Sequence record: MW825358.1
Strand: one strand, 5' to 3'
DNA: 64,000 nt
Shown here in pieces: positions 11,420 through 63,120 of this stretch. The notes under the pieces were generated by a model, which worked only from the letters and a program-made list of their open reading frames with translations, did not search any database and was not told where the DNA came from. A program made the translations under genes and the position numbers. The stretch's first letter is position 1, and each line of letters opens with the position of its first letter.

Positions 11420-13459
11420 ATGTCTCCCAACGAGCTTCCTTTCAATGTGGAGATTTTCCAGCCCACCCAAGCTGTCCTGGACATGCTCAAGCCAGTGTCC
11501 AGCGTGGACTACTACGAGAACACCAAGGGCGATCTCCATGAGGAGGGCCTGTTCTCGATTAGCATCTTCGGACGCATGGGTGATGAAGCGCGCGATAAGC
11601 GTTTCTCCTACATTGACATCAAGACCCAGATTTTCCATCCCATCATTTACAATCGTTTGATCCGTTTGAAGAAGCTCTACCAGGGCATCCTCAATGGTGA
11701 TCAATATGCCGTATGGGACGAGGCGCGCCGTGACTTCTTTCCTGCCAATGCGCTGGAAGGACAAACCGGCTTTGCCTTTTTCTGCGAGCACTGGAAAAAG
11801 ATCCAGTTCAACCGCAACACCTCTGACGTGCGCGAGATGCGTGTCAAGGTCATTGAGAAGTACCGCGATCGGGCCATGACCAGTAAGATCTTGGTGATCC
11901 CGGCGGGTATGCGTGATATTGAGGTGGACGAGAATGGTCGCACCAATGTCAATGAGATCAACGCGCTGTATCGAAAGTTGATTTCAATCTCGCGAGTGTT
12001 GCCAGATAATGCCGAGCCCAATGACCCTAACCAGAATCTGGCCCGGCGGTTATTGCAAGCCTGTTTCAATGATATCTACGATCTGATTGAAACCATGCTC
12101 TCTGGCAAGGAAGGCTTCTTCCAATCTAAGTGGTCCTCACGTAACGTGGTGAACTCCACCCGTAATGTGATCACCGCCATGGATACGTCTGTGGCCAAAC
12201 TCGGTGCGCGCAATGCCCCGCGCTTTACCGATACGATCGTAGGTCTTTGGCAGCTGTCCAAGGCTGTCTTGCCTGTAACGATCCACCACTTGAAAAACGG
12301 CTACCTGTCTGAAGTCTTTGCCTACGGCAATCGTACCGCACGCCTGGTCGATCCGACCACGCTCAAAGCTGAGATGGTCGATGTCTCCCCTGATGCCTTT
12401 GATCGGTGGAACACCGTAGAGGGGTTAGAGCGGGTGGTGTCCAGTTACAAAGAGTTCTCTTTGCGCAGTCGTCCTGTCACTGTCGATGAGCGCTATTTGG
12501 CGCTGTTGTATGCCCCCAAGGGCGCGGCGGTGTTCAAGCTCTTTTCTGACATCGATGAGTTGCCAGAAGGGGCTGACCGTAAAGACGTTCGCCCGGTTAA
12601 CTTGATGGAACTGCTGTACCTGTCTGGGTACAAGATCTGGAATGACCAGGTCGGCACGGTCACCCGCTATCCGGTGACCAACGTGGGCAGTTGCTATCCC
12701 ACCACGGTCTATGTCAAGACCACCGTGGTCGGTGAGATGCGTCGTGAGTTAGGTGATGACTGGCAGCCCCTGCCAGGCGATGAACATCTGGCCCCAGAGT
12801 TCCCCACCTATCAGCCCTTGGCTTATCAAGATAGTCTTGTCATCCCCAGCACCCGTCTTGCGGGTCTGGGAGCCGATAACCTTCTGTGCACAGCAGAAGG
12901 TAAGTCCTGTGCGCTGGCGACGGTGCGCTTGCATTTCCCTTAATTGCTGGGAACCCTTGTTAAACATACAGGCTACAACGTGGGACGAAAGTCCGAGCGT
13001 GAATGCTTGAAAACTGTATGGTAGAGGCAATCAGCAGCTGATCCCCTTTGTGATTCCGCTTTTTAGCGTTGATAGCATGGGGCGAGTTCAACGACTATCC
13101 CGTAGCTGGGAGTACACCGGAATGGCCGGTGGAAATAGGGAAACTTCTCGAATCTGCGTCTGGGCAAAACGCTGCGAGAAGAAGATATAGTCTGGCCTGC
13201 AGGGAGACCTGCAGCAGTGGAGCTGTAGTTGCGGCAGTCACCACGCACCTGAGGGGAAACGACCACAGGTGGAACACATGCGTTTGACGGAGACACGGCC
13301 AGCTTTGTGGCCATCTATACCGATGCCAAGAATGACATCATCAACTACCTGAATAGCAAGCAAGCCTACGTTGATCCCATCGGCGGTATTCGTACCAGTG
13401 CCGGGGTGGATACAGTCAACTTGTTCCTGCGCAGCTTTACCGGTAACCCCGACAGCTGA
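11420..13459 (+). CDS. Virion RNAP beta'-like subunit (phiKZ gp180-like), spliced join(11420..12877,13283..13459), 544 aa
   Basis: Exon 1 ends RLAGLGAD; exon 2 starts FDGDTASFVAI; joining restores the catalytic ADFDGD motif. Also LSGKEG, TRYP motifs of beta'. Confidence 0.92.
12878..13282 (+). mobile_element. Group I self-splicing intron (405 nt, no homing endonuclease ORF)
   Basis: 5' exon ends in U, intron ends in G; P AATTGCTGGGAA (12942), Q AATCAGCAGC (13029), R GTTCAACGACTA (13086), S AAGATATAGTC (13182); removal restores frame and the DFDGD motif. Confidence 0.93.
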
Positions 13460-13477: not shown

Positions 13478-14818
13478 ATGCGCCCTAATTTACAAGACGA
13501 AGTCGAATCCAGCGCTGCGCTGTTGGATTCTCTGGAAAGCTACAACGAAACACTCCTGCAGGATCTGCAGGAGCAAGTGTCCATGGAGTCTCACCCACCC
13601 AAGATCGAGTATCTGCGTCAACGTGAGTTGAAAGATATCGAACAGCGTTTGGGTATGGAAGGCCTGGACATGCAGGGCGTCAAGGACTTGTTCTCAGCCA
13701 TTGGCCGAGGAGCCAATGCCTTAGGTCATGGCTTTATGAAGTTCTTAGATGCGATCCACCGTTTGGTCGATACCACCCATCTGGTGCGTGCGCGCCAACT
13801 GAAGGAGTCCTTCAAAGCCATCTCTAAGGAAGAGGCGGCTATTCAGAAGGGCCGCATGGAACGCCCCAAGATTGCCGCAGCCTTGGCGGTGGGCGGGGAA
13901 GTGTCAGGTTTATTGGGTCAAGCCAAAGGTCTGGTGGATTTCTCTCGTCGCACCACCACCAATGTCTTGCCCGAGCTGGCTTCGGTCAGCCGGCGCGTGG
14001 CGGCCCAGATCAATGCAAAGCGTTGGATGGGTAACGATGCGTTCAATGCAGAAGTGATAGAGCTGGCCAATATCTTGGGTACAGGCAAGCTGCCTATGGA
14101 GCGTTACCCAGACAAGGACTTTCAAAAGCTCTGGCCTGGTAACCGCACTATCTTCCGCACGATCAAGCCCAAGCGTCCACGCAAGGAACCTAACACCAAC
14201 TCTGTAACCGCGCGTAAGGTCGTGCAGGCCGTGAGCACTACTTCGGTGGGCATCAACGTCAAGTCTGATGTGGTCAAAGGTAAGGCAGATTCGATTCTGC
14301 CCGTACTGACGCCCGCCGAGGCCATCCAGCTCATCGAAGCGGCCGAGGCCTTGTTGCATGAGACTATTCGTGTCAAGGACGTGGCCAAGGGATATGCCAA
14401 GGATAAGGTTCCCTCGATGATCTCAATGATGATCTCTGGGTTCTTCCATCAAGCCGGGCGTGTCTATGATGACATGTTCACCGCCCAAGACGATGGCTAC
14501 CATGTGGTTGATATGTCAGGCGGTAAAGCCACCCGACATGAGGTGGGTACACGCAATACCCTTGGTAGCGTTGGTGCTTTGGCCGATGGCGTGCGCAAGG
14601 GCGCCAAGGTGGGACTGTTGTCTTTGGAAGAAGACACCGTTTCCATGGAAGATGACAAGGATGAACTGCGGGTGCAACTGGCATCGTGGGTCAGCCGTTA
14701 TCTGAAGCTGTCTTTGATTGATCACCACAAGACCAGCCGTGCTTTGCTTTTGCTCTTGGTGGCTGTTGCCCGCAGCTATCTGGATTATGCAGAAGAGAGC
14801 TTGGACTACTACCGTTGA
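13478..14818 (+). CDS. Probable internal head (ejection) protein with cleavable propeptide (446 aa)
   Basis: Acidic N-terminus with VSMES and LGMEG matching the S/A/G-x-E prohead-protease site, followed by an amphipathic helix; lies in the late virion-RNAP operon. Confidence 0.65.
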   Translation: MRPNLQDEVESSAALLDSLESYNETLLQDLQEQVSMESHPPKIEYLRQRELKDIEQRLGMEGLDMQGVKDLFSAIGRGANALGHGFMKFLDAIHRLVDTTHLVRARQLKESFKAISKEEAAIQKGRMERPKIAAALAVGGEVSGLLGQAKGLVDFSRRTTTNVLPELASVSRRVAAQINAKRWMGNDAFNAEVIELANILGTGKLPMERYPDKDFQKLWPGNRTIFRTIKPKRPRKEPNTNSVTARKVVQAVSTTSVGINVKSDVVKGKADSILPVLTPAEAIQLIEAAEALLHETIRVKDVAKGYAKDKVPSMISMMISGFFHQAGRVYDDMFTAQDDGYHVVDMSGGKATRHEVGTRNTLGSVGALADGVRKGAKVGLLSLEEDTVSMEDDKDELRVQLASWVSRYLKLSLIDHHKTSRALLLLLVAVARSYLDYAEESLDYYR

Positions 14819-61184: not shown

Positions 61185-63056
61185 TTGGATCACAAACGCC
61201 AGTATGATGGTATTGCCATTCGACTGGTGGATCTGGATGAAGTCTTCAACACCGCAGCCACCTTACCGGTGATTGTCAACGCCTTCAATACCGAAACGGT
61301 CGATGATCGTCAGGTGCTGGATTCGTTGATCTACACCCACTATGACGGCGACTCGCTGAACATGGTGCCCACCTGTGAATGCCAGCGCATGCGTGGTGCT
61401 GGTAAGATCGGTCTGGTGTGTCCGCGTTGTGGTGGTACGGTCACGCCCGCCAGCGAACGACCGCTTGAATCACTGCTGTGGTTGGCCCCGCCTGAAGGCG
61501 TGGAAACCTTCATCAATCCCCAAGCCTGGACGATGTTGTCCAAGGCCCTTACCCACGGTGGTATTAATGGACTGGCCTGGTTGTGCGATCCGCACATGCC
61601 AGTGGGTCCTGAACCCCATCGTGAAATCCGTCGCCTGATTGATCAAGGATTTGATCGGGGCATCAACAACTTCTACCAGAACTTTGACACGATCATCGAT
61701 CAGCTGTTTAATATCGGTGTGATTGCAGGGTCTAACCGTCAGCAAAAGGCGGATCTGTACGAGTTCATCAAGGCCAATCGCAAACGCATCTTCTGCAAGC
61801 ACCTGCCAGTGCCTTCGCGGATGGGCTTTGTGACCGAACGCTCGATCACCGGCACCTTTGCCGATTCGACCATGAAGCTGGCCATCGATGCGATCCGTAC
61901 GATCTCCGATACCGTCCACTCGCTGCGTCCGCTGGATCTGGGACGTCGTCAGTCGCGCTCGGTCAAGGCCAATGACCTGATGGCGCAATACCACCAGGAG
62001 TTCATGAGCAGCACGCTCACCTCCAAGCGTGGCTGGTTGCGCAAACACGTGTTCGGCTCCCCGTTGTACTTTACCTTCCGGGCAGTGATTTCCTCGCTGT
62101 CTGATGAGCACGAGTATGATGAGTTGCACCTGCCGTGGGGTGTGGCAGTGTCCACCTATGCACTGCACCTGACCTCGAAGATGTATCGGATGATTAATGA
62201 AGAAACCGGTCGTCCGTTCACACCCAATGAGGTGCTCAAGCATCTGCGTGAGCATACCTTGCGGTATAGCCCCTTGTTGGACCGGCTCTTTGATGAGCTG
62301 ATTGCCGAATGTCCATACAAGGGATTGCCAGTGCTGTTCAACCGTAATCCTTCACTGGACCGCGGTTCGATTCAGCAGTTCTTCGTGACCAAGATCATCA
62401 AAGACCCGGAGATCAACGCCATCTCTATGTCTGTGTTGACGCTTAAGGCTCTTTAACGGGTCCTTCCGACAGTAATGTCGGTCGATCATCTCTCTAATTG
62501 CTGGGACCTCTGACGCCAACTATCTTCGGATAGGCGGACACACTACTAAAGCGGAGTGGGTAACCACAAACGTCCAGTTTAAATAACGTGTGTCTTTTTG
62601 CAGACAATCAGCAGCCAAGCTTCCTAACGGCATTACAAGTAACGTCGCGGTCACATGAAACCGCAGCCTAACAATACGGGTGACGTGAAGTAATTGATGC
62701 GTGGAAGAAGGTTCATCGACTAGCCGAAAGGCGTAGGGTGCAAGCGCATCCGAAATGGGAGACTTCCGCGACGGCGGAAGAAGATATAGTCAGTACCTAG
62801 ATGTGAATCTAGGCGGGAGTCAGCGCTCCGGGTCCGTGTAGCGAACGGATTGGACAAATAGCCAAATGCCGATTTCGACGGCGATGCGCTCAACGGCATG
62901 CCTTTGTTGGACAACCGTCACGCTTACGCCTTCAGTGCACTCGCCCCGCACCAAGGTGTGTTGGATCTGGACCGTCCGCGGGCCATGTCCAAGAACCAGA
63001 TCATGCCGCCTCCGGTGGCTTCCACGATCGCCAACTGGCTTCACCACGGCAAGTAA
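61185..63056 (+). CDS. Non-virion RNAP beta'-like subunit (phiKZ gp55-like), spliced join(61185..62450,62862..63056), ~486 aa; start uncertain
   Basis: Zn finger CECQ...CPRC, LRKHVFGS, FNRNPSL; exon 1 ends LTLKA, exon 2 starts PNADFDGD. Confidence 0.92.
62451..62861 (+). mobile_element. Group I self-splicing intron (411 nt, no homing endonuclease ORF)
   Basis: 5' exon ends in U, intron ends in G; P AATTGCTGGGAC (62496), Q AATCAGCAGC (62606), R GTTCATCGACTA (62711), S AAGATATAGTC (62781). Confidence 0.93.
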
Positions 63057-63120
63057 GAAAGCAGGGACGTTAAAGTCCCTGCTGTTGTACCCTACCTACC
63101 TATAAATCGAGGTTGATCAA

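Follow-up and report, generated by a model that had tools for sequence, protein, structure and literature searches.

The 64,000-nucleotide (nt) stretch of DNA analysed here, referred to as the window, derives from Xanthomonas phage vB_XciM_LucasX (MW825358.1; 100% identity by blastn, window coordinates equal record coordinates), a lytic jumbo phage of X. citri with a genome of 305,651 bp (PMC9009655). We found that the gene for beta'-N of its non-virion RNA polymerase (nvRNAP) is split at the catalytic loop by a 411-nt sequence (62451-62861) with the features of a group I intron. With a probability that we put at about 0.9, this sequence is a genuine self-splicing intron of subgroup IA, and its splicing would be needed to obtain the complete nvRNAP beta'-N. 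The intron is missing from the database record, as MW825358 annotates LUCX_60 (61185-62456, 'similar to RNA polymerase beta subunit') and LUCX_61 (62898-63056) as separate hypothetical proteins. Nor is it mentioned in the LucasX genome paper (PMC9009655). A preliminary description, made from the DNA letters alone, had placed at these positions a second group I intron, different from the 405-nt one in the gene of the virion RNA polymerase (vRNAP). The Rfam match (RF00028), the U.G wobble, the terminal G and the restored reading frame described below agree with that proposal.

Introns were searched for with Rfam cmscan and the group I intron family RF00028, whose gathering score is 50 bits. Exactly two group I introns were detected in the window, and scanning all 305,651 bp of the record added no others. 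One match, at 62441-62813, covers the full model (positions 1-253) with 54.7 bits and an E value of 3.9e-11; the other, at 12876-13214, scores 56.8 bits and corresponds to the vRNAP intron. The nvRNAP intron starts after U62450 and ends with G62861; no other pair of U/G boundaries close by restores the reading frame. Translation continuing from exon 1 would meet a stop after two intron codons, the first of ten in-frame stops across the intron. The joined exons encode a protein of 486 amino acids (aa) reading ...LTLKA/PNADFDGD (here and below, a slash within a protein motif marks the insertion point). It aligns without gaps across the junction with the uninterrupted protein WJJ55231 of phage RTH11, the nearest sequenced relative (~74-77% nucleotide identity), and LTLKAPNADFDGDALNG is identical in both. 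The two exons are also contiguous on the phrog_2987 profile, meeting at positions 414/415. The expected ligated junction is ...AAGGCT joined to CCAAAT..., and the predicted tryptic peptide that spans it is APNADFDGDALNGMPLLDNR. The parts of the gene are as follows (ORF, open reading frame).

61185-62450 (+): nvRNAP beta'-N exon 1 (LUCX_60), ending ...LTLKA; phrog_2987 positions 2-414, homologous to phiKZ gp55, collinear with RTH11 WJJ55231
62451-62861 (+): predicted ORF-less IA-type group I intron, 411 nt; RF00028 match, helices mapped, covariation over 10 introns
62862-63056 (+): nvRNAP exon 2, PNADFDGD... to the stop codon; phrog_2987 positions 415-476, residues 434-495 of PDB 7OGP chain A

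The NADFDGD codons, which specify the catalytic loop, occupy 62865-62885, and the GenBank reading frame LUCX_61 begins at 62898. The last three bases of the intron form a TAG in the frame of exon 2, and between this TAG and the NADFDGD codons there is no start codon. The catalytic loop should therefore be translatable only from ligated exons. Taking into account that the ribozyme appears intact, that the catalytic loop could not otherwise be expressed, and that LucasX is a viable lytic isolate (PMC9009655), we infer that the intron is spliced. In the mechanism that we propose, the pre-mRNA would fold into the ribozyme, an external guanosine would attack after U62450, and the freed exon 1 would then attack after G62861. 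The ligated mRNA would encode the complete 486-aa subunit, while unspliced RNA would yield only a 423-aa product without the three catalytic aspartates.

The primary and secondary structure of the intron was then mapped. All core helices of a group I intron, including the P3/P7 pseudoknot, could be assigned, as listed here.

62445-62465 (+): P1, exon AAGGCU with the internal guide GG[U]CCUU (guide 62459-62465); Rfam alignment, RNAfold of 62441-62490
62466-62481 (+): P2, hairpin of CCGACA and UGUCGG with a GUAA tetraloop; Rfam alignment, helix mapping
62489-62494 (+): P3 5' strand, pairing with 62757-62762 over 6 bp; both bases altered in 4 of the 6 pairs across the family alignment
62498-62614 (+): P4, 62498-62504 with 62608-62614; invariant in all 10 introns
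62509-62604 (+): P5, 62509-62512 with 62601-62604, inside P4 and bearing an extension of ~90 nt; helix mapping, family alignment
62615-62711 (+): P6, 62615-62624 with 62703-62711, bearing an extension of ~78 nt absent from relatives; helix mapping, alignment
62718-62722 (+): P7 5' strand GACUA, pairing with UAGUC at 62787-62791, the guanosine-binding helix; invariant in all 10 introns
62723-62751 (+): P7.1 (62723-62732, GAAA-capped) and P7.2 (62736-62751); helix mapping, with covarying pairs in P7.2
62763-62780 (+): P8, hairpin of 7 bp; helix mapping, family alignment
62796-62852 (+): P9 (62796-62813, GUGA-capped), followed by two more hairpins, P9.1 and P9.2; Rfam alignment, mapping
62861 (+): terminal G (omega G) at the 3' splice site, closing the TAG in the exon-2 frame

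The register of P1 differs slightly with the method, U62450 being paired with G62460 or G62459, and a U.G wobble is placed at the splice site in both cases. The presence of P7.1 and P7.2 between P7 and the 3' strand of P3 (P3') assigns the intron to subgroup IA (criteria in PMC3984707), the usual class in phages. This P7.1/P7.2 region resembles those of the introns in the nvRNAP genes of phiKZ and of an IMG/VR relative, UViG_3300024996_000006. A UUCG-capped hairpin in the P5 extension is unique to the LucasX nvRNAP intron among the ten aligned introns. Covariation was examined in an alignment of the core of this intron with nine related introns, counting the pairs of the LucasX-derived structure. 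Although the structure was thus taken from one of the aligned sequences, 90.2% of the cells were paired (31-44% when the partners were slid), both-side changes were found in 28 of the 49 pairs, and none of 500 shuffles matched the observed covariation. The invariant core positions are all intact in the nvRNAP intron, and its helices have been kept through compensatory changes. The intron contains no ORF, its longest open stretch being 38 codons.

Several observations weigh against a functional intron. The Rfam score exceeds the cut-off by only 4.7 bits, P1 contains one mismatch or bulge, and P10 would be at most 2 bp. In the intron tree discussed below, the nvRNAP intron joins that of UViG_3300024996_000006 with weak support (92.6/63). 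The ligated junction was found in no RNA run, either by searches of the runs or by read mapping. These returned the DNA source run, and the RNA-labelled runs that share sequence with this region hold only short, low-depth, unspliced-looking contigs of a relative. In a long-read transcriptome of phiKZ, no spliced reads were reported for the predicted introns (bioRxiv 10.1101/2023.10.13.562163), so that RNA data documenting in vivo splicing are scarce for this family of RNAP introns as a whole. On the other hand, PDB 7OGP chain A, whose name joins PHIKZ055 and PHIKZ056.1, contains PNADFDGD, and the spliced product of phiKZ gp55 is thus accepted in structural work.

Taken together, the missing RNA evidence, the borderline Rfam score and the two separate coding sequences (CDSs) in GenBank might point to a ribozyme that no longer splices, leaving a pseudogene or a gene expressed in two pieces. 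We regard this as very improbable. A decayed ribozyme would not be expected to retain its invariant core positions and to have kept its helices through compensatory change, and expression in two pieces would leave the catalytic loop without any possible start codon. In addition, the nvRNAP beta'-N gene is single-copy in the LucasX genome and part of the essential nvRNAP, and both exons are as well conserved as in relatives without the intron. A genuine, splicing group I intron is the reading that we retain.

Concerning the identity of the interrupted gene, gp55 of phiKZ is established as part of the nvRNAP and gp180 as part of the vRNAP. LUCX_60 is 36% identical to gp55 (E 2e-98) and gave no match to gp180, and LUCX_4 is 41% identical to gp180 (E 4e-135) and gave no match to gp55. 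LUCX_4 is flanked by a gene for a 2459-aa gp181-like protein on one side and one for a 1463-aa beta subunit (gp178-like) on the other, and the order of the RNAP genes in LucasX is that of phiKZ. By homology and gene order, LUCX_60/61 thus corresponds to nvRNAP beta'-N and LUCX_4/5 to vRNAP beta'-N, and the virion and non-virion labels that the preliminary description had given to the two beta' genes can be kept. Directly before LUCX_60 lies LUCX_59 (phrog_4795), which encodes chimallin, the nuclear shell protein. The record splits vRNAP beta'-N in the same manner as nvRNAP beta'-N, listing LUCX_4 (11420-12943) and LUCX_5 (13307-13459) as separate hypothetical proteins, and in RTH11 the corresponding gene appears as two unrelated CDSs (WJJ55172/55173; locus L006, 1489-3534). 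The vRNAP intron at AD/FDGD is annotated in neither the LucasX nor the RTH11 record. Two further features of these genes are given below.

12878-13282 (+): vRNAP beta'-N intron, 405 nt, GLGAD/FDGD (LUCX_4/5); RF00028, phrog_2986 positions 4-484 and 485-538
63049-63097 (+): Rho-independent terminator 3' of the nvRNAP gene; MW825358 annotation

Between the vRNAP beta' and beta genes, we also noticed a 446-aa gene (13478-14818) where phiKZ has none. Its product matches the family of phiKZ internal head proteins, PF12699, weakly and below threshold, at 18.9 bits where 27 are required.

The relationship between the two LucasX introns was examined next to their positions. The nvRNAP site KA/PN lies 12 nt upstream of the vRNAP site AD/FD, the distance being made up by the codons P-N-A-D, as had been described. 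Identity between the two is 49% over alignable columns, and no other pair in the matrix of ten introns scores lower. Their local similarity is ~4 standard deviations (SD) above shuffled sequences and is carried by conserved core segments. With the other seven aligned introns, the nvRNAP intron shares 55-63% identity, and the values for the UViG and phiKZ nvRNAP introns are 60% and 58%. Its best local alignment is with the ribozyme of phiKZ gp55 (score 313 against 131+-15 for shuffles, ~12 SD), and its weakest are with the LucasX and RTH11 vRNAP introns (~4 SD). In the intron tree, the vRNAP introns of LucasX and RTH11 group together (99.9/100), apart from the nvRNAP intron. The tree is poorly resolved, with bootstraps of 48-63 on deep nodes, and was used only to reject the two LucasX introns as sisters. 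The claim that they share the core alone stood in part. The low identity and the concentration of similarity in the core were observed, but the introns also have in common the IA architecture, P7.1/P7.2 and a similar 3' tail. As all aligned introns share one architecture, to call them unrelated would be too strong, and the two LucasX introns are best described, from these comparisons, as separate lineages of one chimallivirus RNAP-gene intron family.

We also considered a recent copy within the genome, in which the vRNAP intron would have jumped into the paralogous nvRNAP gene by ectopic homing. In its favour, the two introns share a structural family and interrupt paralogous genes at a common motif. 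Moreover, in phiKZ the introns of gp55 and gp180 have an overall identity of 71%; they hardly differ from P9 onward to the 3' end but diverge upstream of it (locus L004, 3214-3540; locus L020, 2347-2657, minus strand). Such near-identical 3' thirds suggest recombination or gene conversion between the paralogous beta' introns, that is, a jump or homogenization in that phage. In LucasX, the pair is instead the most divergent of the matrix, the insertion sites are 12 nt apart, the guide sequences differ, and so do the peripheral extensions of P5, P6 and P8. RTH11 carries a vRNAP intron at the same AD/FD site, 83% identical to that of LucasX, while its nvRNAP gene is uninterrupted. This distribution, together with the 49% identity, argues against a recent duplication; near-identical introns, which duplication would predict, were not found. 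A recent copy is thus largely refuted by the sequence comparison, and we see hardly any room for it. The independent histories proposed in the preliminary description fit these results, and the nvRNAP intron would have entered, or stayed in, the LucasX genome independently of its vRNAP counterpart. As an additional observation on the vRNAP intron, most stem positions of its 5' hairpin (window 12880-12900; locus L006, 2955-2975) have changed between LucasX and RTH11, yet the stem is fully paired in each (CCUUCUG with CAGAAGG in LucasX, CCCGUAG with CUACGGG in RTH11); the guide UAAGUC that follows is conserved.

The occupancy of the beta' catalytic loop by introns is sporadic among related phages. 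The nvRNAP gene is uninterrupted in RTH11 and also in L009, an IMG/VR relative with 78% protein identity. Contiguous matches to exons 1 and 2 showed that an intron at this place is also absent from PhiPA3, 201phi2-1, Psa21, Phabio, D6, Viktualia and others. UViG_3300024996_000006, with 72% protein identity, carries a 1408-nt intron (locus L008, 4273-5680) at PN/AD, which contains an ORF of 362 aa (338 aa from the first ATG) with HNH and NUMOD1 domains. In phiKZ, for whose introns Ceyssens et al. 2014 is the primary paper, the nvRNAP gene gp55 is followed by an intron with the HNH gene gp56 and by PHIKZ056.1, the site again being PN/AD. The phiKZ vRNAP gene gp180 (gp180 and gp179) is split at AD/FD, as is the endonuclease-free variant in fMGyn-Pae01. 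These phiKZ sites come from our own mapping, and PMC11512511, citing Ceyssens et al. 2014, likewise states that gp55 and gp180 each contain introns. In Serratia phage 2050HW, an ORF-less intron of 296 nt interrupts the nvRNAP gene at DFDG/D. Across the nvRNAP and vRNAP beta' genes, there are thus four insertion points within 21 nt, at offsets 0 (KA/PN), +6 (PN/AD), +12 (AD/FD) and +21 (DFDG/D). AD/FD is conserved from Xanthomonas to Pseudomonas phages, and KA/PN has so far been seen only in LucasX and in a close relative in run X5. What is new here is the KA/PN insertion point and the unannotated intron; that both beta' genes can be split at the catalytic loop was already known in phiKZ.

Some further observations concern the DFDG/D site. 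Within Moabitevirus, phage Moabite seems to lack the intron of 2050HW (locus L005, 2290-2585), its match to exon 2 running unbroken from PNADFDGD; this contrast would be another presence/absence polymorphism. In addition, another sample, represented by the RNA-labelled runs X4 and X5, yielded two contigs of low depth, which match 62776-62881 (96%) and 62883-63056 (97%), and both break exactly at 62882/62883, which corresponds to DFDG/D. One continues into sequence resembling the 5' end and guide (GCCGUC) of the 2050HW intron, and upstream of the other stands ...AATTTG, which looks like the end of an intron. The breaks and intron-like flanks suggest that this close relative of LucasX probably has two group I introns, which would flank a 21-nt micro-exon encoding PNADFDG.

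More distant relatives of the nvRNAP intron were also looked for. When the intron by itself was compared by blastn with 50,697 phage records, hits were confined to core segments, in introns of Bacillus, Escherichia, Vibrio and Erwinia phages, among them Bacillus phage polymerase and ribonucleotide reductase (RNR) introns. An exact 24-mer of P9 had no match in IMG/VR or the JGI metagenomes. A degenerate P7-P7.2-P3' pattern retrieved 17 IMG/VR loci that belong to the wider family; the phiKZ and UViG introns were at least as close as any of these, and the LucasX-specific CAUCGAC variant occurred in none. We also considered that the intron had slid from PN/AD to KA/PN, as LucasX uses the Asn codon AAT found in intron-bearing PN/AD alleles. 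The first six intron bases are unlike CCAAAT and gave this no support, and sliding was rejected.

The LucasX intron can be compared with several known systems. It can be aligned all along with the introns of phiKZ, UViG_3300024996_000006 and Serratia phage 2050HW and is a divergent member of the family found in RNAP genes of phiKZ-like, nucleus-forming phages, but it shares its insertion site with no described member. The phiKZ gp55/gp56/PHIKZ056.1 intron lies in the catalytic loop of the same gene and has the same ribozyme type with a similar P6, P7.2 and P3'. It differs in its site 6 nt downstream (PN/AD), its length of 1372 nt, its HNH-NUMOD endonuclease gene, its G+C content of 38% (37-38% in the phiKZ introns, 51% in LucasX), and in lacking the P5a hairpin and the long P6 extension. 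The intron of UViG_3300024996_000006, whose host protein is the one 72% identical to LUCX_60, is similar in P7, P7.2 and P3', but is distinguished by the PN/AD site, its 1408 nt and its HNH/NUMOD1 ORF. The gp180-type vRNAP introns of LucasX, RTH11 and phiKZ occupy the same motif of the paralogous gene and have the IA-type architecture and a similar 3' tail; they are ORF-less in LucasX, RTH11 and fMGyn-Pae01 and similar in size (405 nt), whereas their site 12 nt downstream and the 49% identity set them apart. The Serratia 2050HW intron is likewise an ORF-less family member in the same gene, but it is inserted 21 nt downstream and its core is closer to the vRNAP-type introns. The group I intron of PhiPA3 gp210 also interrupts a chimallivirus RNAP gene at catalytic residues (Birkholz et al. 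2024, PMC11620839). Its host gene encodes the vRNAP beta subunit rather than beta', and it encodes an active HNH nickase, whereas the LucasX intron encodes nothing. The T4 td, nrdB and sunY introns and the SPO1-type DNA polymerase introns (IA2) share with LucasX the IA class, a position at conserved sites of essential phage enzymes, and an early in-frame stop (PMC3984707). They differ in their host genes and mostly carry endonuclease genes, and their splicing takes place with ribosomes trailing the polymerase, unlike the situation in nucleus-forming phages.

With respect to the persistence of the intron, we could not find in the LucasX genome any homolog of the gp56-type or UViG-intron HNH endonuclease. 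As the intron also has no endonuclease gene of its own, it is most likely a now-immobile, ORF-less resident. Its G+C content of 51%, near the 54-60% of the host gene, and the Ala codon before it fit a resident intron: the codon is GCU in LucasX, GCG in RTH11 and GCA in L009, and GCU provides the U needed at the 5' splice site. The intron probably persists since any inexact removal would wreck an active site that the phage needs.

A possible but rather unlikely role is that of a shield. The 21 nt of the catalytic loop (KA-PNADFDG-D) might be a contested landing strip, where ORF-less introns break the target sites of HNH endonucleases from co-infecting chimalliviruses and so immunize both polymerase genes. 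Such endonucleases are encoded by introns of relatives that target this stretch (phiKZ gp56; UViG_3300024996_000006), in which four insertion sites lie within 21 nt. Interference by an endonuclease from an RNAP intron has been documented (PhiPA3 gp210 against phiKZ, PMC11620839), and ORF-less introns combined with free-standing endonucleases at one site are known as 'collaborative homing' (PMC3984707). Selfish persistence explains the data equally well, and the LucasX intron, lying 6 nt upstream of PN/AD, leaves the 3'-exon sequence from PN onward contiguous. As a further point against a shield, HNH intron nickases of the I-HmuI type recognize mainly 3'-exon sequence and can cut intron-containing alleles. 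If the idea were true, both LucasX introns would represent a defensive use of introns rather than a selfish residue. Separately, we observed that RTH11, which has no nvRNAP intron, encodes a free-standing homolog of the intron HNH endonuclease (locus L038, RTH11 279602-280060; E 4.7e-10), and that LucasX has none.

The preliminary description had also raised a timing switch, in which condition- or time-dependent splicing of the two introns would set when each polymerase is made. Like the shield, this is speculation, and we consider it the less probable of the two roles, with little chance of being correct. It would be in line with both beta' genes needing splicing, with the dependence of T4 intron splicing on translation and growth state (cited in PMC3984707), and with the separation of transcription from translation in nucleus-forming phages (PMC12908238). 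RTH11, L009, PhiPA3, 201phi2-1, Psa21 and Phabio nevertheless manage without an nvRNAP intron, which therefore cannot be a required part of the programme, and the LucasX intron carries no riboswitch-like or ligand-sensing addition.

These results leave current concepts of such introns unchanged and bear on the annotation and natural history of RNAP genes in this group of phages. As the two halves of each gene are annotated as separate hypothetical proteins, the records of LucasX and RTH11 mis-describe the catalytic beta' subunit of each polymerase, and these genes are left out of the published RNAP gene count. KA/PN is a fourth insertion point in a very short, essential stretch of the active site that has been repeatedly occupied by group I introns. 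LucasX and RTH11 form a natural intron-plus/intron-minus pair infecting Xanthomonas, which could be used to address the question of endonuclease protection. LucasX would also offer a case of group I splicing in which transcription is physically apart from translation.

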